Shown here in pieces: positions 52,514-64,000 of a stretch of 64,000 nucleotides of DNA. The stretch is from Eutreptiella sp. 'Long Island Sound 2002' (Eukaryota > Protista > Euglenida). Location of the stretch: assembly GCA_964036045.1 (NCBI GenBank), contig OZ038378.1, positions 1,364,001-1,428,000 on the forward strand, written 5' to 3'. The notes under the pieces were generated by a model. That model ran no database searches, was not told where the DNA came from, and saw only the letters and a list, made by a program, of their open reading frames with translations. The translations under genes were made by a program, and so were the position numbers. Within the stretch, counting starts at the first letter, position 1, and each line of letters opens with the position of its first letter.

Positions 52514-52739
52514 ACGGTGACGGTATGCGGGCTGCGGCCCTAGCAGACTGCGAAAGACTGCGCACGAACAGGCGACGCGCGCATTTACGACAACCGAAAA
52601 AACGACCGCAACTGATCTTCTGCTGAAAGGCTCAAATGGAACGCGGTTGTTTTGAACCGTTCTGCAGCCCAAATTTTTAAAATAGTTGCATTATTTTATC
52701 GCCAGATAAAGGAACGATACCTTACTGGTAACGAGGCTA

Positions 52740-53876
52740 CTCATTTTCAACTCCCTCCTACCCAATTTCAACTCCCTCTTGCTCATTTTCAAGTCCCTCC
52801 AAGTGAAAATCCACTCCCTCCTACTCAATTTCAACTCCCTCCTACTCATTTTCAAGCCCCTCCTACTCAATTTCAACTCCCTCCTACTCGATTTCAACTC
52901 CCTCCTACTCAATTTCAACTCCCTCCTACTCAATTTCAACTCCCACCTGCTCATTTTCAACTCCCTCCAAGTGAAAATCCACTCCCTCCTGCTCAATTTC
53001 AACTCCCTTCTACTCAATTTCAACTCCCTCCCACTCATTTTCAAGTCCCTCCTACTCAATTCAACTCCCTCCTACTCAATTTCAACTCCCTCCTACTCCA
53101 TTTCAACTCCCTCCTACTCAATTTCAACTCCCTCCTACTCATTTTCAACTCCCTCCAAGTGAAAATCCACTCCCTCCTACTCATTTTCAACTCCCTCCTA
53201 CTCATTTTCAACCCCCTTCTACTCAATTTCAAGTCCCTCCTACTCATTTTCAACTCCCTCCTACTCAATTTCAACTCCCTCCTACTCAATTTCAACCCCC
53301 TCCTGCTCATTTCCAACTCCCTCCAAGTGAAAATCCACTCCCTCCTACTCAATTTCAACTCCCTCCTACTCAATTTCAACTCCCTCCTACTCATTTTCAA
53401 CTCTCTGCTACTCAATTTCAACTCCCTCCTACTCAATTTCAACTCCCTCCTACTCAATTTCAACTCCTTCCTACTCATTTTCAACTCCCTCCTACTCAAT
53501 TTCAACTCCCTCCTGCTCATTTTCAAGTCCCTCCAAGTGAAAATCCACTCCCTCCTACTCAATTTCAACTCCCTCCTACTCAATTTCAACTCCCTCCTAC
53601 TCATTTTCAACTCCCTCCTACTCAATTTCAACTCCCTCGTACTCAATTTCAACTCCCTCCTACTCAATTTCAACTCCCTCCTACTCAATTTCAACTCCCT
53701 CCTGCTCATTTTCAACTTCCTCCAAGTCAAAATCCACTCCCTCCTACTCAATTTCAACTCCCTCCTACTCATTTTCAACTCCCTCCAAGTGAAAATCCAC
53801 TCCCTCCTACTCATTTTCAACTCCCTCCAAGTGAAAATGCACTGCCTCCTACTCAATTTCAACTCCCTCCTACTCA
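52740..53876. repeat. 21-bp minisatellite (ctcctactcaatttcaactcc)n, about 54 units
   Basis: Direct inspection. The period translates as the heptad LLLNFNS or SRRELKL, and there are interspersed variant units (ctccaagtgaaaatccactcc). Confidence 0.97.
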
Positions 53877-53907
53877 CAAAGACAAGCACAATAACGATGA
53901 GGCATTG

Positions 53908-56900
53908 TTATAACTTCCAAAAGTCTGGGTCCTCCTTAGCCGAGTCATAATCTTCGGAACCTTCCACAATGCCATCATATTCAACCATATTGTGAATGTG
54001 TGCATGCAAATCATCATTGTACGCGGCCTGCTGCGCACTAAGGCAAGGAGCCTGTTTCACGGTGGTTAGCGCATCTGAAAGGTCAAGGGCAACATTCAGC
54101 TCTTCCGTCAGCGGCGGACCGCTACCCCTACCCCGACCCCTACCTCTTCCCTTTGTAGCACCCTTTGTACCATCCCCTCGCGTAGCGGCCTTCCTGTCAC
54201 TTGGCTGCACGGTTCGCTTCGCGGCCACGGGCGGGGGAACAGGTCGTGGTGCTTGTGCACCTGCCACATGGACCTCTGTGGAGGAGGCTCGCATGTCCAC
54301 AAATTGGTTGAGTAGCCTCTCCTCCTCTTCGAGAAAGGCCCCTGCATCCTGTCCCTTGTCGGAAAGATGAGTTGCCACTCGATCCACATTAGCTATATAC
54401 TAACGCATCCGGGACTGCAGGTTCCCAAGGGAGCGGACAATCTGCTCGCGTTTCGTTTTGGGTGGCAAATCCGCCCAGGAGGAGATGTCGGTCAACATAA
54501 TCTCATCGTCTGTAGCATGGATTGCCACGGGTACCTGCACTGTGGGTAGGGGGAGGCGTCGGCTGCTGCATTTGGCCTTGATAAGGACCTCAGTTGCAGT
54601 CTGAAATTGTTTTAAAATAAAAATTGGATTGAACAACCCAAGATGGAAGCCGACTGAAGATGACCGATGATGCAAAACAGCAAAATAGTGACGACATGGA
54701 TGCCCGACTCGGACAGCCAGTCCACAACTACACCACAACTGCGTATAGGCACCATCCACAGCCAATGGCTCGAACAGACAAACATAATGTGGACAGTTCA
54801 TGTAACGCGAAGTGCAGCTGGATTCACTTCGCTTTACCTCATATACTATGTTTTTGCCTTGGATTTGTTGCACACGTTTGGAGATCGCACAGAATCTCGG
54901 TAGGTCTACCAACTCCGTCTCAAGTGACTCGTGACACTGTCGATCATAGTTCCATAAGGGTGCTGCCCTGTTGGCATCTATATATTGGGCCTCCCTGGAC
55001 ACGTCATACTCATACACGAGGTACGCAGATGAAGCATTCATCTGCTGGAGCATTCTATCAAACGCCCAGCTTGTCACCTTGCCTAAAACGAACTTGACAT
55101 AGAATGGGAAGGCTTGGTTAGCTGTTTGGTGATTGGCGTGTCGGTGATTCACCATTTCAGTATATTCAAGTTTATAGCCCTCCTTGGAGAGCAAGTGCAA
55201 AACAGATAGAAAAATGTGGTAGTAACCTTTTCTTGCACTCACGTGGCGCTTTATGCGGCAATTCAAAGACTCAGCCCTCTGTGTGGACTTGCAGCCGAGG
55301 TTAAAAACTTCTACCTGCCATGCAACACACCAACAGTCAAGACGATGTAGGGGGGATCTGACTCCAAGGTAGTCCTTGACAGTTTTCCAGCGGGGGTCCT
55401 CCAGAATTTTGCGCCAGAGAATATCAACAGCGTCCTTATCTGGGCACTCCTGAACCTGTCGGATGGCGCTCTCAAGAGCAGTGAAATCGTGTTGCTCGAG
55501 GGAGTTTCGGCAGTTTTCGGCCAGATTTTTGTAAATGTGAAAAAGGCAGAGGAAGTGAGCAGTTTGGTCCGGGGGGAAAACCCTGGGAACGGACCCCAAG
55601 AGGGCGTATGCAGCATCACTGAACAAAACCCGGGGGGCACAACCGGTTGCCTTTATCCACTCCTGCCAGAGCCACTCATAATCCTCTGCATTTTCATCGC
55701 TTGGCATGCAGCCCTGAGCCAGGAGAAGGGTTTGGCCATGTTCGTTGATACCGCAAAACAGGGCCACTGCCTCACCGTACCGATACGTTTTATCTTGAAA
55801 AATGACTTGTGCATATTTTCTGGCGTTTTTTACTTGCTCTGGCGTCATAAAAAACCATCTTCGTACAACACCAGTGACTGGGTCAGGGGCTTCATGATTG
55901 AAATACCCGGCAGGATCTGCCTGTTTGAGCATTTTCAGGTGGTTAATCAAACGTGCAAGATCATTTGGGCCCATCTTGCGTTCGATGGACTTGAAAAAAT
56001 TTCTGATGTGCTTGGTTGAATACCCTTTGATGGCTGGGTACGCGTCCTCGCTATATTTCTTCCTCAAATTTACAAGAATTTGCTCCGACATTTTACGGTG
56101 CTCATACGCCCGCTCAAGGTCGTGCCAGAACTGATCAGGGAGGGCTGAATTGTCCAGTGGGGCGGCCTCCTCCTCGTCAGGCCACCAATGGTCAGAGTGG
56201 TCCCAATTACACTCGGTTAGCTTCCACGGGCCCGTGCCAGGATCATGGGTTAGCGTTGCACCATATGGACACAAATCAGTCTTTGTGAGAGGCCGGGCTG
56301 CTTTTCTGGGCTGCTCTACTGGTTTCTTTTAGGGGCCTGTGTTGTTTTACACGTCCCCAAATGCGACAACCAATACGTGCCCAATTACTCCCCCCTGCAG
56401 CCTTGCTGGTAACACTGTTCTGTATTGCCAACTCCCCCCGAATCCTATTTAGGTATGCAACAGCCTCGGTGTGGGACGGGAAGGTGCAGTCAACCTCGTC
56501 TCCAGGTCGGGGGGAGTGCTCGGAGGGACAATGGGCTTCGCGTTTCACGCGTTTGCGGGGGGGGGGGGTGTCGGGATGAGGTTTAGGATCAGAACGCGGT
56601 GACTGGGCGGCACTAAACTCATGCTTAATTAAGGGGGCCGGACCCGTAGATTCCGTGGGTCCCGAGTCAGATGCCGGGGTTGGAGATATGATGGCAGGGG
56701 GGTTTCTTGCGGGGGCAGTGTTCATTGAAACTGCGTCGACCCGGGGGTACTCATTAGGCTCCATTTTTACCACGGCGGCAAGGCCAGTAGGGACAGGTCT
56801 GGATGATGCACCATTCGGAGGGCTTGTCAGAGCTTCTGGGCCTAGCACATCACTGCTTGAAACTGCCACTTCCGCGCGTTCTGTTTTGACGTTGTCCAAC

Positions 56901-57475
56901 ATTGATGAAGAAACAGATCTCAAGGTCGCACAAAACGGATCGGCATATACACCCTCAAAGAGCAAGGTCATCTTAGCGGTGGTAGGGTGGCCCATGGACG
57001 CGTGCAAGGACCAAAAATTCTTTCGAAGGAAGTCTGCGGTTTGATCCTGCAGCGGGATGCAGTTCCTTGCAACACCACCGCGGAGACGGAACAGTACAAG
57101 AACTCGTTCATTACGGACCCGGGTACCGGTTCTGCGTGAAACTCTACCAATTCGCTGATCATGAACGGGCACACCAGTGATGATGCTCACCAGATTTGAG
57201 ATGGCAGCCTCACTGATATCCTTATGCACACACAGAACGAGGGTTCTGTCGAGGAGTGGCACGAAAATGGGCATCTCTTTCCTCGCACATTGTCCCTTGT
57301 GGAGTAGTCGACACGGTGAGCATCTTCGCCGCCGTTGGTGGTGTCTACGATGCCTCCGATGGAGAAGGGAGAGAACAACGGCGGCCGAAACGACACCACA
57401 AAAGACCATGGTCAGCCCCACAAGGCTCCAGCCGACATCGCATATTGCGCAGAGCAAAAACATTAAGATGGACAT
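53908..57475 (-). pseudogene. Mutator-like (FAR1-MULE-SWIM) transposase with N-terminal ubiquitin-like domain; one frameshift and one nonsense codon
   Basis: MULE core VIFQDKTY...RVLFSDAA...FLCLFHIYKNL...TQRAESLN. SWIM CSCGLAVRVGHPCRHYFAVL. A FAR1-like domain is split across ORFs 56276-57475 and 54400-56274. 53908-54387 is in frame after the TAG at 54400-54402. Confidence 0.88.
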
Positions 57476-57509
57476 GTCTACAACGATGCCCGAACGTGAG
57501 AGGCTTACC

Positions 57510-58945
57510 CCTTTTATTGATTCACAAAGGTCCTCTGATGCACGAATTTTATAGGCTAACCCCTGACTTATGATTTACCAGGGGCCTCTGATGCACGTAC
57601 TTGATAGGCTACCCCCTGACTATTGACTTACCAGGGGCCTCTGATGCACGAACTTGATAGGCTACCCCCTGACTATTGATTTACCGGGGGCCTCTGATGC
57701 ACGAACTTGATAGGCTACCTCCTGACTATTGGTTTACCAAGGGCCTGTGATGCACGAACTTGATAGGCTACCCCCTGACTATTGATTTGCTAGGGGCCTC
57801 TGATGCACGAACCTGATAGGCTACCCCCCGATTATTGATTTACCAGGGGCCTCTGATGCACGAATTGATAGGCTACCCCCTGACTATTGGTTTGCCCGGG
57901 GCCGCTGATGCACGAACTTGATAGGCTACCCCCTGATTATTGATTTACCACGGGCCTCTGATGCACGAACTTGATAGGCTACCCCCTGATTATTGATTTA
58001 CCACGGGCCTCTGATGCACGAACTTGATAGGCTACCCCCTGGCTGTTGATTTACCGGGGGCCTGTGATGCACGAACTTGATAGGCTACCCCCTGATTATT
58101 GATGTACCAGGGGCCTCTGATGCACGAACTTGATAGGCTACCCCCTGACTATTGACTTACCAAGGGCCTCTGATGCACGAACTTGATAGGCTACCCCCTG
58201 ACTATTGAGTTACCAGGGGCCTCTGATGCACGAACTTGATAGGCTACCCCCTGACTATTGATTTACCAGCGGCCTCTGATGCACGAACTTGATAGGCTAC
58301 CCTCTGACTATTGATTTGCTAGGGGCCTCTGATGCACGAACCTGATAGGCTACCCCCCGATTATTGATTTACCAGGGGCCTCTGATGCACGAATTGATAG
58401 GCTACCCCCTGACTATTGATTTACCGGGGGCCTCTGATGCACGAACTTGATATGCTACCCCCTGATTATTGATTTACCACGGGCCTCTGATGCACGAACT
58501 TGATAGGCTACCCCCTGATTATTGATTTACCACGGGCCTCTGATGCACGAACTTGATAGGCTACCCCCTGGCTGTTGATTTACCGGGGGCCTGTGATGCA
58601 CGAACTTGATAGGCTACCCCCTGATTATTGATGTACCAGGGGCCTCTGATGCACGAACTTGATAGGCTACCCCCTGACTATTGACTTATCAAGGGCCTCT
58701 GATGCACGAACTTGATAGGCTACCCCCTGACTATTGAGTTACCAGGGGCCTCTGATGCACGAACTTGATAGGCTACCCCCTGACTATTGATTTACCAGCG
58801 GCCTCTGATGCACGAACTTGATAGGTTACCCTCTGACTATTGATTTACCGGGGGCCTCTAATGAACGAACTTGATAGGCTACCCCCTTACTTTTGATTTA
58901 CGGGGGGGCCTCTGATGCACGAACTTGATAGGCTACCGTCTGACT
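57510..58945 (+). repeat. 53-bp minisatellite, about 27 units, with an internal 529-bp (10-unit) duplication
   Basis: gcctctgatgcacgaacttgataggctaccccctgactattgatttaccaggg at 58166, 58219 and 58272. The variant ggctgttg occurs at 58041 and 58570. Confidence 0.97.
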
Positions 58946-58959
58946 CATGTATGGCAAGA

Positions 58960-59330
58960 CGTTGCCCTCCCCAGCCTTGAAGGATGCGGGGGGATGAGGG
59001 GGGTGGAGGGGGAGGTGAGGGCTGAGCTGGGGCGGGGGGGGGGGGGGGGGCAGGGAGGGGAGGGGGGAGGGTTGGGGGGCTTGGGCGGTTGGAGGGGGAA
59101 TTGGGGGGGCCCCGGGGTTGGAGGAGGGTGCGGGGGGGGATTGGGGGGGATATAGGGAGGTTTGGGGGGGGTAAGGGTGGGGCCAGGGGAGGAGGATGGC
59201 GGAGGAGGCTGGAGGGGCGTAGGGGGGAGAGGGGTGGGGGGGCTTGGGGGGGTTGGAGGGGAGGTTTGGGAGGGCCCGGGGGGGGGAGCGTGGGGGGGGG
59301 ATGCGGGGATAAAAGGGGGGAACACTGGGG
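58960..59330 (+). repeat. G-rich low-complexity tract
   Basis: Dense runs of 3-15 G. Confidence 0.85.
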
Positions 59331-60635
59331 CGTCTGACATACGACGGGCATCAACTCAATTGGTGATTGAATCATGAATCATCCAAAGGCCCACGCACGA
59401 CAGGCAAGGGAACGAAACAAATCAATCAAAGCAGAAGGATTGAGCAAGTAAAATGTGCGAATCCAGTACATGATTCTCAAGGATCCACTAGTATTTGTTC
59501 ACACTTGGGTTAAACGGGAGAAACATATTGGGAGTCAGAATCAGGCTGATGACGACAGCGCTAACTGACACCTTTAAGCACGTGGGGAAACCATAAAAAC
59601 TGGCCGGTAACCTGGAAACAAAACTCGCTGGCTGGGATTCGGCCCAGAGGATGCCGTAGCTTGGTTATCGCCCCCCTATAGGGGGACCCTGTGGCACTCG
59701 AGGTTCCCGGGGTGTGACCACACAGGATCGGCACATCTGTGGCGTCACGTGCCTTCCCCTAGCCTCGGTAGCTGCCTTACCTGCACTAATTGGCCAGCGC
59801 CGTTTCTGAGGTCCCTTTTGACCTGTTTTTAAGGTCAGGAACAAGGTTCACGCCCACTTACAATGTGGGTTGGGTCTGTATAATTCTCTTGGACCCATTT
59901 GGGTTCAAAATTCGAGTTCCCTTAACCGCACCCACGCAACTATGAAGCAAACGACGCAAACGCACTGTAGCTGTGGTGTCTTTGTAGCCTGTATCAGCCA
60001 TTACTCTCAAGGTTAGACAAACGAAAAGGGTTCGGTCCCGTCAAACCAGTCAAATCAGACGAAATGGGGTGCCGTAAAGGCACTGTTACATTTTCAAATA
60101 CCTGGGTAGATATGAATAATACTCTTGAACCTAAAAAATAGCGTGTTGTAACAACACCTGCCGTAACAGGAACAAGTACCTGTACCTGCAATCTGTCCCA
60201 CCTGGTGAAACCAGATGGAAAGTAAGCAATGGGACTCGGTCAAGATTAGATCAAATTAGACCAAGTAGGGTGCCCTTTGGCTCCAAAAAAATGAACAAAC
60301 ACCCCAATGGCGCCAAAGAGAAAGTCACAGGGCTAGACACGCGCGTATCACGCTCTCAAAAGTAGGAGGTCAAACAGAATTCACCGCGCAGGTGGTAGCT
60401 AGAGAAAGGAACAGAATGCAATGGAGCCTGGCCTTTCAATATTATATCTGGGTCCGGGAACCGGTATCACGGGTAAAATCTGCCAAGCAAACAGCAGTCT
60501 GCTGACCCCCCCGCCGTAGAAGAAAGTCGCGGAGCCTGCAATGCGTGGGTTCAGATCTCAGTCTTGGTCCGGCGATGCGCTCTGCCACTACACACGCCAT
60601 CATCTCACTGCCCAAACCACTTCACAATGCAAGCA

Positions 60636-61073
60636 CTAGAAAAACTTGTAGCGCTTCCTCTTCGGGTTCTCGGAACCGCAGAGGGGCCAATTAGGGTTAC
60701 CGGAACCCTCGCGCGAGCCCCCCCACTGACCCTCCAACCCAATGGCGGTCTCATCGGGCAGATAGACCACCCATGCAACTTGGGTGGTTTCCCCCTTTTC
60801 GGTTTCCCGCTCCACTTGCCGAAAGTTCCTACCCCCTGCAAGCCGCTTCTCATTGACGTCCGGGACCCAGAAGGCTTCAAAACTGCTGAGTCGGCCCTGA
60901 GACTCGGGCCGACAGAAGGTGAAAGGGGGGGTGCACTGGTCGGAGTCGACCAGAGCGAGGGGGAGATAGGGGACGACCTTTTCTGGTGGCAGGAGCCACT
61001 GCGTCGGATTGCCCTTGCTGAGCATCTCTTCCACCTCAGCCTTCGCCTTCTGAACAGGGACAGACCTCTTCAT
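60636..61073 (-). CDS. 145-aa ORF of unknown function; may be the C-terminal continuation of the SET gene
   Basis: Its ATG overlaps the TGA of ORF 61070-62590 (ATGA). Composition is protein-like. Confidence 0.4.
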   Translation of the reverse strand: MKRSVPVQKAKAEVEEMLSKGNPTQWLLPPEKVVPYLPLALVDSDQCTPPFTFCRPESQGRLSSFEAFWVPDVNEKRLAGGRNFRQVERETEKGETTQVAWVVYLPDETAIGLEGQWGGSREGSGNPNWPLCGSENPKRKRYKFF

Positions 61074-63528
61074 CTGCCATTTCCCACCCCAATCAACAAA
61101 TTTGGACAGAGTTGTCCAACAAAAACTTGGATCCCGAACGTCAAATTGCTCAAACCTGCTTCCTGCACCGGCAAGGACCCCGTACGAATGAACTCTTTAA
61201 AAACATTTGCCATTGCAAACGTGCAACGATACGGACCCCCGTCGACACGAGCCCTCTTTGCCTTGGGCTCGTCAGGCTCAACGCCGTAGGGGGGGCTGAC
61301 GGGGGAGCTCTTTCCCCAATGCTCAATCCGCGACTGCAGATCAGGCATCTTAGCAAGTGCCCTGGCCACCACCACCTGACAGATCCGCCTGATCCTCGGC
61401 GAATCCAAGCCTTTAGCTTCCCAGACCAGCAGAAACCAGCTGGACTTCCCCCTCAAATTCTTGCTGCACTCGGCAATGACCGAGATGCAGTGGCCCATCC
61501 CTCCCCCAGTCCCTCCACCGCCGTCGACGAGCTTAATGGGATGACCATTAACTCTGCAAATGACATGCCCATAAACCCTGTCCTTCACCCTCTCGTACAC
61601 GGGCTTGTCCTCGGTCTTGATGGTTTTTTTGCCAGGCGGAGCTGCCAGGTGCTCTGCCCGCCACTCAGCCCACTCCAGCGTCGCCCCCCACCGGCTGTCG
61701 ACACCCATAGCCCTCTCTGCCCGGACAAAAAATGTCTTCTGGCGGATACCACGCACTTCAGCATGGTATTCCGCATCATACCCCCTGAGGTCGATTCCGA
61801 CCTGCAGCCACTGACCCGTCTGGCCGTACACGTCCGTCCTATTCTGCACCGAAATCACCTCCCACTTACCACCCACAAACACCATTTCTACGACACCCCC
61901 ATAAGCAGCCCCCTCGAACCCGTAACAAAACCAGGGAGGGTAAACGCCTGCAAGTCGCGACCCAGCCGTGATGAAGTCGCCCCCCAAAGAATTCTGGTCA
62001 CCCCAGACCGTGGTCAACGGCCTGACGAACCTCCCCCTCCGCAAGTCCATCTTGAAACAACAGGTCCGGCTTTCAACCTGTGTCAAGTGCCCCCCCATCT
62101 CGGACCACAGCAGACGCACCCTGTCCCCCTTCCTGACAACAAACTGCCCCCCATCAACATGGGTCACGGTGGCCTGACTGGGGTAGGTCACCTTCGCAGA
62201 AAAATACTGGCGACCCACCATGGACCCGTCATCAGCATACAGTTGCCCTGCAGGCAGGGCAGAGGCGCTGGGAAGAATGTTCTGGGTGGTTGAAACTGGC
62301 TGGTTGGAACCTTCTGCAGCAGGGTCATCAGGGTCAGCAGCATCAGCACGTGGAGGCGAAGGGGGCAACGGGTAATCTACGCCATAGAACAGGGCCAGCT
62401 CTGTACCCGCCTTCACCTCCCGCCGGGTGTAAACTCTCGGGGTACCGTCATCTAGGTGGATGATCAAGTCGCAATCCTCCAGGCGAGGGCGAGCGTTGAT
62501 ACGGCTCAGAATATTCCCCCTTCTACCCCCGTCCACCCAAACCCCCCTCCCAGTCCTTGACTCTGCCCCCCCCGCCCTCGATGCACACAACCTTATCCCC
62601 CCTACCCGTCACGCAATCCGGTGCCGTCCCTTCAATCCTTTCCCCCTTGTACTCCCCCAGGCAGGTGTCCGCCTGAATATCCACCTTCGCTTTCAACCCC
62701 CGGCCTTCCCCAATCGTGGAGACCACGACCTCGAGGTGCTTCTTCATAGAAAAATCCCGCCGCTCCACCACCTCCCGTTGCCCCTCCTCCTCCCCCGCCC
62801 CCGTGTCCCTGGCCCGGCGTTTTTGACCCCGTGTTTTGACCCCCGCCGGTTCCTTGGCAACCCCCCCGCCCCCTTCTTCTGCCCCCTTCCGCCCACCCTC
62901 CGCCTCCGCAGTCTCGGTGTCCTGGCGCCCTTGAGTCGACCCTCTCCGCTCCTGCTCCTCTTTTTCCTACCCCTTCTCCTCCCCCGTTTTCTTTGCCTCC
63001 TCCTCCTCCTCCTCCTCCATCAACACGTCGGTCGGGGTTGGGGTGGGGGAGCGATCTTCAAGCTGCTCCGCTTTCTTCCCGGCCTCCTCCGAGGTCGTTT
63101 GACCCACCGGCGACAGGGCCTCGAAGGGGCGCCGGGGGCTGGGCGAGCCTTCTCCAAGAAGCTGGCGTTCACGACTTGGGCTTTGGCCTCGCTCCTTCTC
63201 ATGGGCCCACTTCTCCGCGAGCTCCTCTCTCCTTTCCTCCTTTTCCTTTTCCTTGAGAACTGAATACAAACAGCAAGGATCAGATTTAAATTCTTCTCGG
63301 AAAAGGAAGAAAATATTTACGCATGCAATTACATACCAAGGGCTCTCACATCCCCTCGGTGCAGGTCCCAGGACGCCTTCCTCCTCTTCTCCTGCTGCGG
63401 CTTCTCCCTGTGCCCCGCCGTCTTGAACCAATCCACGTCCTCCCCCTCTTCCGACTGCAAGTCCTCCCACCCGCGCAGCAGCTCGGCCGCCAGGTCCTTC
63501 GTCGTCTCGGACAGTGGACTCGCAAGAC
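61070..63528 (-). CDS. SET-domain protein (charged N-terminus, SET domain about 62380-62740, long uncharacterised C-terminus); frameshifts in G-rich runs
   Basis: LEVVVSTIGEGRGLKAKVDIQADTCLGEYKGERI (62523-62771 frame) joins VWVDGGRRGNILSRIN...VYTRREVKAGTELALFYGVDY (61070-62590 frame) if one G is removed from a G-run. The upstream exon is linked by a GT-AG intron. Confidence 0.72.
63260..63336 (-). other. 77-nt spliceosomal intron
   Basis: GTATGT...pyrimidine-rich...TTCAG. It is AT-rich within GC-rich exons, and removing it joins ...GDVRAL to VLKEKEKEE in frame. Confidence 0.75.
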
Positions 63529-63784
63529 CTATAGGTGCAGGGATATGGTTTCGTTTATGAGGCTCTTTGTGAATCAGTAATCAGGGGGTATCCTATCGAG
63601 GTTGATGATAAGTGGTGTTGTGCAATCAGTGGCAAACCTGCTTCTGCCCCTTTTTCATCGTCTTTTGGTGCTCCTTCTTCGCCCTCCTCCGCTGCTTCCT
63701 CCTCAGCTTCCGCTCCTTCCTCCGCTTCGGCTTCCGCTGCACCTGGATCAGAGGATGTGCGTTCTATTGCAAGGACCACCCTAG

Positions 63785-64000
63785 CAATGTCGTGCATCAG
63801 GGGCGGTAAATCAATAATCAGGGGGTAGCCAATCAAGTTCGTGCATCAGAGGCCCCTGGCAAATCAATAGTCAGGGGGTAGCCTATCAAGTTCGTGCATC
63901 AGAGGCCCTAGGTAAACCAATAGTCAGGAGGTAGCCTGTCAAGTTCGTGCATCAGAGGCCCCCGGTAAATCAATAGTCAGGGGGTAGCCTATCAAGTACG
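63785..64000 (-). repeat. 53-bp minisatellite in inverted orientation to 57510-58945; runs off the window
   Basis: gggggtagcctatcaagttcgtgcatcagaggcccc, with period 53 (caagttc at 63834 and 63887). A degenerate unit lies at about 63555-63600. Confidence 0.95.

Follow-up and report, generated by a model that had tools for sequence, protein, structure and literature searches.

Plant PB1-MULEs and MUSTANG-B genes carry a PB1 domain, which has a beta-grasp fold, on a Mutator-like (MULE) transposase, and some of their clades also carry C48 (Ulp1) (Joly-Lopez et al., 2016; PMC4948706). The element described here is similar in that a Mutator-like transposase bears an extra ubiquitin-like domain, putatively of the beta-grasp class, on its N-terminal side, and in that it possibly encodes a C48 protein as well. 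However, its domain matches ubiquitin and not PB1, keeps an R-L-x-G-G tail, is placed behind a hydrophobic and basic leader, and comes from a euglenid-like protist host.

The precursors Ub-eL40, Ub-eS31, and FUBI-eS30 are cleaved by deubiquitinases. As in the element, a ubiquitin-type domain ending in GG has an unrelated protein attached to it in cis, and GG is followed by a residue other than Pro; natural ubiquitin fusion precursors were also found among the PDB matches of the domain. In these precursors the ubiquitin part lies at the extreme N-terminus and is near-invariant, whereas here it is internal, is 6-8 residues shorter than ubiquitin, shares about 32-41% identity with it over the aligned stretch, and is attached to a transposase. 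In cytopathic pestivirus (BVDV), ubiquitin is inserted in the polyprotein and host ubiquitin-specific proteases make the processing site. This is similar to the present case in that a mobile or selfish element would have captured a host ubiquitin coding sequence, and the use of host proteases is also proposed here. In contrast, the BVDV insertions are recent captures in an RNA-virus polyprotein and near-identical to host ubiquitin, while the domain described here is old, diverged, and part of a DNA transposon.

Ubl domains that have diverged and stand at the head of mobile-element proteins are also described for the cargo of nematode Mavericks (WASP proteases as well as KRMA kinases), where they are N-terminal and exchanged as modules between lineages, according to the available part of a preprint (bioRxiv 10.1101/2022.07.12.499685). 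Those domains sit on cargo toxins and kinases rather than on a transposase, and that part of the preprint describes no GG tail or membrane leader. The first-pass annotation of the present locus knew of no Ub fold joined in cis to a transposase; the PB1-MULEs provide a precedent for a beta-grasp domain on a MULE transposase (PMC4948706).

The Element and Its Copy in the Window

The window, which is the whole stretch of 64,000 nucleotides that was analyzed, contains a dead copy of a Mutator-like DNA transposon that is large (~17.6 kb), was active recently, and is bounded by terminal inverted repeats (TIRs), with the transposase on the minus strand (Table 1). Membership in the Mutator group is based on PF10551, which scored 45.5 bits in the window copy and 62.2 bits in an intact copy (gathering score 27.6). 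The 68-bp TIRs were found at L012:3027-3094 and, inverted, at L012:20677-20610, and the left boundary is common to three copies. Judged by these TIRs and by 17.3-kb copies that are 99.7% identical, the element is a recently active one. No target-site duplication (8-11 bp) was readable at these ends; the right end of L013 is truncated and L012 abuts the terminus of another copy. In L003, L012, and L013 the 21-bp array also lies 3' of the gene, with inverted copies of its units close to the left end, and the 53-bp array has an equivalent position in all family-A loci. The order of the SET-like cargo gene is collinear with L003 and L007.

Table 1. Parts of the element copy in the window, numbered from the first nucleotide of the window.
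Feature	Position	Strand	Basis or remark
Right TIR	52515-52581	-	Matches the 68-bp terminus of intact copies at 94% over 67 bp
Subterminal tandem array of a 21-bp unit (54 copies), 3' of the transposase gene	52737-53876	.	TRF
Broken transposase frame	53900-57475	-	Alignment: 93.3% identical to intact CDS L003:5788-9294
SWIM-type zinc-finger pattern CxC...CxH	54667-54741	-	Weak Pfam SWIM, E 0.11; kept in family C
MULE DDE transposase domain	55525-55791	-	Pfam PF10551
Cys/His zinc-finger-like region, WRKY-GCM1/FAR1-type pattern, spanning both frameshifts	56190-56500	-	Translations
Unconserved Pro/Ser-rich linker with basic PRKRVKRE motif (possible NLS)	56530-57073	-	Unalignable between families
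Ubiquitin-derived domain ending RLRGG, 67 residues	57074-57274	-	Homology searches, B vs C conservation
N-terminal leader: hydrophobic stretch, polybasic run (HRRHRRHHQRRRR), LLHKG motif	57278-57475	-	
53-bp tandem array, 27.6 copies, immediately 5' of the transposase ORF	57485-58945	.	TRF
SET-like cargo gene carried by the element	61153-63209	-	89% identical to the L010 gene by tblastn; weak Pfam SET, E 0.002

The first-pass annotation read the ORF at 56276-57475 (minus strand) correctly: it contains MPIFVPLLDRTLVL...VLVLFRLRGG at 57274-57074, with the RLRGG intact. LHASMGHP comes next, then a Pro-rich stretch and the Cys/His zinc-finger-like region. This region runs on, in a different frame, into the ORF at 54400-56274, which bears the Pfam MULE match (1e-11). 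Alignment with the intact CDS revealed two 1-bp deletions, near 56311 and 56298, which put the two ORFs in different frames and therefore break the fusion in the window copy. Further lesions are a 9-bp deletion at 55784, within the catalytic domain, and a 2-bp deletion near 53934. The second ORF is terminated by a premature stop at 54400-54402, which was taken as a substitution because the alignment shows no indel there. A short intron joining the two ORFs (a 37-nt GT..AG candidate) was ruled out, since intact copies are uninterrupted and the window copy has the two deletions.

The first ORF starts with MSILM (57475), ~66 codons upstream of the ubiquitin-like stretch. The Met at the start of that stretch is a peculiarity of the window copy, and most copies have Ile. 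Conserved Cys/His patterns resemble the accessory zinc fingers of MULEs (N-terminal WRKY-GCM1/FAR1 type, C-terminal SWIM), the SWIM match being weak, and the zinc-finger-like region is unbroken in intact copies. It had been called FAR1-like, a call that stands at the level of the pattern; no Pfam FAR1 match was found in the window copy or an intact copy.

Intact Copies and Three Families

The fusion of the ubiquitin-like segment to the transposase, which the first-pass annotation had proposed from the window alone, holds in intact copies of near-identical sequence that belong to the same assembly. In these, both parts form one ORF of 1,168-1,181 codons (L003:5749-9291, for example, is a single ORF of 1181 codons), and intact single-ORF copies (P0021 and P0023) were found on four contigs. 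Two further families, B (P0016) and C (P0048), have transposases that are 29-33% identical and share the layout of family A: a hydrophobic leader, a polybasic run, a ubiquitin-like domain of ~70 residues, an unconserved, disordered linker, the zinc-finger-like and putatively DNA-binding region, MULE, and SWIM. Intact copies of families A and C have an uninterrupted reading frame that extends from leader to transposase. The concern that other copies might lack the Ub segment is thus removed, because other copies and two diverged families keep it.

The ubiquitin-like domains of families A and B are 39% identical (E 9e-10). Between families B and C the domain has 72% amino acid identity (dN 0.20, omega 0.38), which is close to the 74% identity and dN of 0.19 of the DDE core. 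Conversely, the linker is only 30% identical (dN 0.84, omega about 0.8) and has in-frame length differences of 54 and 78 bp between subfamilies. Judged by these substitution rates in the comparison of B with C, purifying selection acts on the domain as strongly as on the catalytic core. Within family A there were too few substitutions for an informative dN/dS. As a separate observation, the synonymous divergence of the domain between B and C is uniquely low, which could reflect exchange between lineages like that of the Maverick Ubl domains.

All family members found belong to one assembly. A search of 1.84 billion representative proteins with the N-terminal ORF returned copies of the same family only. 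A word-indexed protein search added family C (P0048 and P0049) and a fragment (P0050) among the matches listed, and the same type of search with the family alignment gave nothing new among the matches listed. A metagenome scan yielded 45 distant MULE relatives, of which 0/45 had a ubiquitin-like domain, many of the contigs being too short to inform.

Relationship of the Domain to Ubiquitin

Sequence comparison confirmed that the stretch at 57274-57074 resembles ubiquitin beyond chance. In Smith-Waterman alignments, the window copy shared 21/65 identities with ubiquitin (z 4.7), a score reached by 0/500 shuffles, and intact relatives gave z values of 7.5-11.8. A profile built from the three families matched ubiquitin chains exclusively in the PDB (252 matches at E<=1), and single ubiquitin was aligned end to end with E values from 1.6e-4 to 4e-3. 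With the FRLRGG tail removed, the profile again found ubiquitin exclusively and nothing else at E<=10; over the two profile searches there were 237-252 matches, every one of them ubiquitin. Moreover, two separate parts of the domain, corresponding to residues 1-44 and to the tail, align to ubiquitin in the correct order.

Individual sequences gave less. Pfam PF00240 matched family B at E 1.9e-4 with 21.6 bits, under the 25.4 cut-off, and gave no match for families A or C. The 67-residue window segment alone had no Pfam match, and phmmer with this segment against the PDB was empty. Single-sequence searches were insensitive here and only the family profiles were sensitive enough for the ubiquitin match. 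In an ESM feature search, every Pfam-bearing neighbor among those listed belonged to a ubiquitin-family cluster. No Pfam match to PB1 (PF00564) was found at E<=10, the matches of family B being ubiquitin and Rad60-SLD.

Structure prediction, which had been suggested as a check, did not reproduce the ubiquitin fold. Two AlphaFold models, made from shallow alignments of 7-8 sequences, had pLDDT values of 65 and 74 and a beta-beta-alpha-beta-beta order. Among known structures, eS24, uL23, and ACT-like folds came closest (Z 5-6), within the noise range of the tool, and ubiquitin was absent from five structure searches with these low-confidence models. Given the few aligned sequences and the noise-level matches, this absence is not counted as a negative result for the fold. 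The first-pass annotation also placed a Ub fold in a viral ORF1 of the same window, but that stretch (11180-11400) does not match the profile of this domain.

Tail, Leader, and Proposed Mechanism

The tail reads RLRGG in family A, RLSGG in family B, and RLCGG in family C. All three retain R72, L73, G75, and G76, no aligned member departs from GG, and position 74 varies (R, S, or C), giving an L-x-G-G pattern. In each of the three families GG is followed by Val or Ala, i.e. not Pro, and the conserved R-L-x-G-G tail fits a putative processing site. Val and Ala are stabilizing by established N-degron rules, therefore destabilization through the N-end rule, which had been suggested as a control of transposase stability, is not indicated.

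The domain was also initially taken to be N-terminal. In all three families it is in fact preceded by a leader of 66-96 residues, which in A, B, and C reaches Kyte-Doolittle maxima of 2.07-2.74 over 19 residues. The hydrophobic stretch has no K/R ahead of it, and 9-13 K/R occur in the next 30 residues; this hydrophobic and basic character is retained while the sequence diverges. Families A and C have no Met from the start of the leader to the ubiquitin-like domain, and only a start at the Met that opens the hydrophobic stretch would take in the domain.

The retention of this layout in three old lineages suggests that the enzyme may be made as a tethered precursor and then cut loose. The reading that we prefer, at a probability of roughly 0.45, is that the ubiquitin-derived domain acts as a cis cleavage module which would release the transposase from its membrane-anchor-like leader. 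The transposase would be translated as one polypeptide behind the transmembrane-like stretch and polybasic run, and a ubiquitin or ubiquitin-like-specific protease would cut after the conserved L-x-G-G. The likeliest cutting enzymes would be host deubiquitinases, or alternatively, in family A, the product of the element's own candidate Ulp1-like ORF. The cut would free the transposase from the leader and allow nuclear entry, therefore the precursor would be latent until cut. The Ile44 patch is partly changed in the domain, and because of this change, the divergence from ubiquitin, and the shorter length, general deubiquitinases may not recognize it. A fuller version of this hypothesis, which we consider rather doubtful, would have a membrane-tethered inactive precursor in which the cut at L-x-G-G, by a host deubiquitinase or (family A) the element's Ulp1-like protease, is the release switch. 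Transposition would then be gated by the ubiquitin-protease activity of the cell, and the freed leader-Ubl-GG might itself serve as a tag that is bound to membranes and can be conjugated.

Control over transposases usually lies with host silencing or with an element's own inhibitors and dosage effects. If the preferred reading is true, a transposase that bears, behind a membrane-anchor-like leader, a ubiquitin-derived module for its own cleavage or regulation would represent a new way to control transposition post-translationally. It would likewise offer a clear example of co-option of the ubiquitin system by a DNA transposon, which to our knowledge has so far been known mainly for viruses and ribosomal-protein precursors. 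Furthermore, the presence of beta-grasp domains on Mutator transposases would extend beyond plants to a protist lineage far removed from them, and from PB1 to ubiquitin proper.

The candidate protease lies upstream of the transposase in family A (L010:5190-6362), where the motif order HWW...ILDSL...HQPDGWSC corresponds to the His...Asp...Gln...Cys order of Ulp1-type proteases. C48/Ulp1-carrying MULEs are known, namely KI-MULEs and CUMULE (as cited in PMC4948706), and family A elements are similar to them in this motif order. They differ in that the ORF has no HMM support for C48, nor any Pfam or PDB sequence match, stands as a separate gene with J-like and SET-like parts joined to it, and did not turn up within 8 kb of the transposase genes of families B and C.

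Alternative Explanations

The domain could instead be an integral, uncleaved UBL, which would recruit ubiquitin-binding partners or the proteasome, serve as a ubiquitin-fusion-degradation-type degron keeping the transposase low, or mediate PB1-like oligomerization. Loss of the RLRGG tail is usual in integral UBL domains, whereas R-L-x-G-G is retained here in three families despite saturated synonymous divergence. An uncleaved domain would be consistent with an internal position and far divergence from ubiquitin, but it leaves a conserved membrane-anchor-like leader ahead of a nuclear enzyme unexplained. Precedents exist in the beta-grasp PB1 on plant MULE transposases, which has no processing tail (PMC4948706), and in the N-terminal Ubl of the Maverick cargo MSFT-1, which appears to regulate protein abundance (10.1101/2022.07.12.499685). 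We consider an uncleaved domain possible, though on the unlikely side.

It is improbable that the segment lies outside the working transposase, either through a downstream Met start or through removal from the mRNA, leaving the ubiquitin-like ORF as a leader sequence or as a separate small leader and Ubl product. Euglenid mRNAs are trans-spliced, and the models of the gene caller began inside the domain, at an internal GTG. Against this, no Met is conserved after GG in the three families, the unbroken frame of intact copies in families A and C joins leader to transposase, and the domain is conserved at the protein level equally to the DDE core, with its omega of 0.38.

Lastly, it is very improbable that the resemblance to ubiquitin comes from convergence or is only superficial, with another small alpha/beta fold and an incidental GG tail: the ribosomal-protein and ACT-like matches of both AlphaFold models, the silence of Pfam for families A and C, and the empty phmmer search would agree with this, but the models are low-confidence and shallow with matches inside the noise range, while residues 1-44 and the tail each match ubiquitin in order, all PDB profile matches are ubiquitin, and z is up to 11.8 against shuffles.

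Intact copies of the fusion

The Mutator-like element (MULE) in the window had been described at first pass as a transposase fused to an N-terminal ubiquitin-like domain ending in RLRGG. The ubiquitin-like stretch reads as described (see table). The transposase domain itself is found in a downstream ORF that does not share this frame, and a Cys/His zinc-finger-like region spans the junction of the two. Alignment to an intact coding sequence (locus L003; 93.3% identity) showed that the frame changes because of two 1-bp deletions. The window copy is therefore broken, and the fusion was judged from other copies, where it is real. Searching protein data with the MULE ORF yielded many proteins of 86-91% identity, all from a single ENA assembly, ERZ25074135, including one cluster of 205 members. 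In these copies the ubiquitin-like part, linker, zinc-finger-like part and transposase form one frame, so that intact genomic copies retaining the segment do exist. The intact ORF (L003:5749-9291) has 1181 codons, or 1168 counted from MSILM. Database gene models (1097 residues) start at a GTG internal to the ubiquitin-like segment; this product is identical on three contigs and near-identical on a fourth. Most copies have Ile where the ubiquitin-like stretch of the window has its apparent Met1, so the frame must begin upstream, at MSILM (57475).

An environmental contig (L008; JGI sample 3300043015, Ga0436639_0053291, 2345 nt) is 99.7% identical and collinear to L003:7214-9558. It covers the 3′ part of the intact gene, ending short of the ubiquitin-like part, and its near-identity indicates that this organism, or one very close to it, was present in that sample.

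Coordinates of features in the window and in the related locus L010
Feature	Position	Strand	Remarks
Ubiquitin-like stretch MPIFVPLLDRTLVL...VLVLFRLRGG	57274-57074	minus	inside ORF 56276-57475 (399 codons)
Downstream ORF (ORF B)	54400-56274	minus	MULE transposase domain (Pfam, 1e-11); weak SWIM match
1-bp deletions	near 56311 and 56298		alignment to intact CDS
9-bp deletion	55784		beside first Asp of DDE domain; alignment to intact CDS
2-bp deletion	near 53934		alignment to intact CDS
Premature stop	54400-54402		closes ORF B; intact copies continue through
Viral-like ORF1 stretch WPMFVKYHGSSTILLVCDG...	11180-11400	minus	in ORF 10825-12006
Ulp1-like ORF	L010:5190-6362		same element as window copy; would fall past window position 64000

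Conservation across three transposase families

The window copy and its relatives constitute family A. The same assembly, from which all members were drawn, also contains families B (P0016, L001) and C (P0048, L009; P0048 is intact, with 1191 residues). The transposases of B and C share 29-33% identity with that of A and 46-49% with one another. All three begin with a leader whose hydrophobic stretch (Kyte-Doolittle maximum 2.07-2.74 over 19 residues) is preceded by no basic residue; the 30 residues that follow the stretch contain 9-13 Lys/Arg. The leader is followed by an LLxxGR(Y/C) motif and a domain of ~70 residues ending in RLRGG-V (A), RLSGG-A (B) or RLCGG-V (C). The ubiquitin-like domain is thus not N-terminal as first described. 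Moreover, in families A and C no Met follows the hydrophobic start until the domain is reached, so a product with the whole domain must carry the leader.

Between A and B the domain is 39% identical (E 9e-10), and the flanking sequences are unalignable. Between B and C it is 72% identical (dN 0.20, omega 0.38), the DDE core is 74% identical (dN 0.19, omega not computable as dS is saturated) and the linker after GG is 30% identical (dN 0.84, omega about 0.8); within-family substitution counts were too small for use. Synonymous divergence between B and C (L001:8001-10757 against L009:8001-11576) is uniquely low across the ubiquitin-like segment, at about residues 86-200 of B (pS 0.28-0.47 against 0.6-0.97 elsewhere, DDE core included; Fisher p about 1e-6). 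This could reflect module exchange between transposon families or nucleotide-level constraint.

Relation to ubiquitin

Pfam and PDB searches with the 67-residue window stretch alone found no match. A profile of the three families matched 252 PDB sequences at E<=1, every one ubiquitin or engineered ubiquitin, and the single ubiquitins among them aligned end to end (E 1.6e-4 to 4e-3). When the FRLRGG tail was removed, PDB matches were still only to ubiquitin, over residues 1-44; body and tail therefore match ubiquitin independently and in the correct order. The Pfam ubiquitin model detected family B below its cut-off (E 1.9e-4) and gave no match in A or C. In Smith-Waterman comparison with ubiquitin, z was 10.9 (B), 11.8 (C), 7.5 (intact A) and 4.7 (window copy), each score being attained by none of 500 shuffles, and 1.0-2.9 for three decayed family-A copies. 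Among the matches listed in a language-model feature search, all Pfam-bearing neighbours were ubiquitin-family clusters (scores 0.88-0.90, leads only).

The domain falls short of ubiquitin's length by 6-8 residues, in the area of strand 4 and the 3-10 helix. In two AlphaFold models (pLDDT 65 and 74) the elements run strand-strand-helix-strand-strand; the closest structural matches were eS24, uL23 and ACT-like folds (Z 5-6, the tool's stated noise range), and ubiquitin was absent from the neighbours of both. Taken together, homology to ubiquitin is well supported by sequence comparison, while the ubiquitin fold proposed at first pass is not confirmed. A ubiquitin fold was also proposed for a stretch of a viral-like ORF1. 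That stretch lacks a GG tail and is unmatched by the profile of the transposase's domain, whose sole match in six frames of the whole window (hmmsearch, E<=10) was the 57574-56279 piece.

A possible tethered precursor

Ubiquitin tail residues R72, L73, G75 and G76 are common to the three families, and position 74 is variable. L-x-G-G is the pattern recognised by deubiquitinases and clan-CE proteases. Natural N-terminal ubiquitin or ubiquitin-like (UBL) fusions that retain the tail are cut, and integral UBL domains that stay uncut have usually lost it. Further, a basic NLS-like motif is located past the predicted cut site. Given the retained tail, the conserved membrane-anchor-like leader and this motif, the most economical reading would be that the transposase is made as a precursor tethered by the leader and is released by cleavage after GG. 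The main rival, an uncleaved UBL controlling abundance or interactions, seems somewhat less likely. The N-end-rule control suggested earlier finds no support in the position following GG, where Val or Ala gives no suggestion of N-degron destabilisation.

The protease could be a host enzyme or the product of the Ulp1-like ORF of family A, the host being the more parsimonious candidate. That ORF has a weak DnaJ-like match (E 0.005), and toward the C-terminus it has motifs in the order of Ulp1-type proteases, HWW...ILDSL...HQPDGWSCAVF; Pfam and PDB sequence searches gave it no C48 match, so that it lacks HMM support. No homolog of the ORF turned up at up to 8 kb from the transposase genes of families B and C.

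Comparison with known systems

In plants, the Mutator transposases of PB1-MULEs and MUSTANG-B genes bear a PB1 domain of the beta-grasp type, and several MULE clades have C48 and PB1 together (PMC4948706). Nematode Maverick cargo proteins are described with modular N-terminal ubiquitin-like domains affecting protein dosage (10.1101/2022.07.12.499685). Helitron-encoded deubiquitinases are a further transposon-ubiquitin link (PMC9741609). Our literature search found no paper on ubiquitin proper, processing tail included, fused to a transposase. The domain was present in 0 of 45 distant MULE relatives from metagenomes, where many contigs are short.

The family-A element

Family-A copies have sharp common boundaries, and L012:3027-20677 is flanked by 68-bp terminal inverted repeats (TIRs). 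Across 17.3 kb, L012 and L013 are 99.7% identical, and their flanks are unrelated, a sign of recent transposition. The feature order is TIR, the ORF with the DnaJ-like match and Ulp1-like motif string, inverted 53-bp-repeat blocks, a SET-like gene, a 53-bp array, the transposase gene, a 21-bp array and TIR. The window copy extends from the right TIR (52515-52581) beyond position 64000; the 53-bp arrays and SET-like gene of the window (52515-64000 and beyond) are internal to a 17.6-kb Mutator-like element. Near the left end, units of the 21-bp array reappear inverted, resembling subterminal transposase-binding repeats. Retroelement genes (RVT_1 with Exo_endo_phos; rve with RT_RNaseH) adjoin or interrupt family-A copies (L010:1-1081; L007:20397-23237). 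The left end of the L010 element is rearranged and carries subterminal sequence in triplicate.
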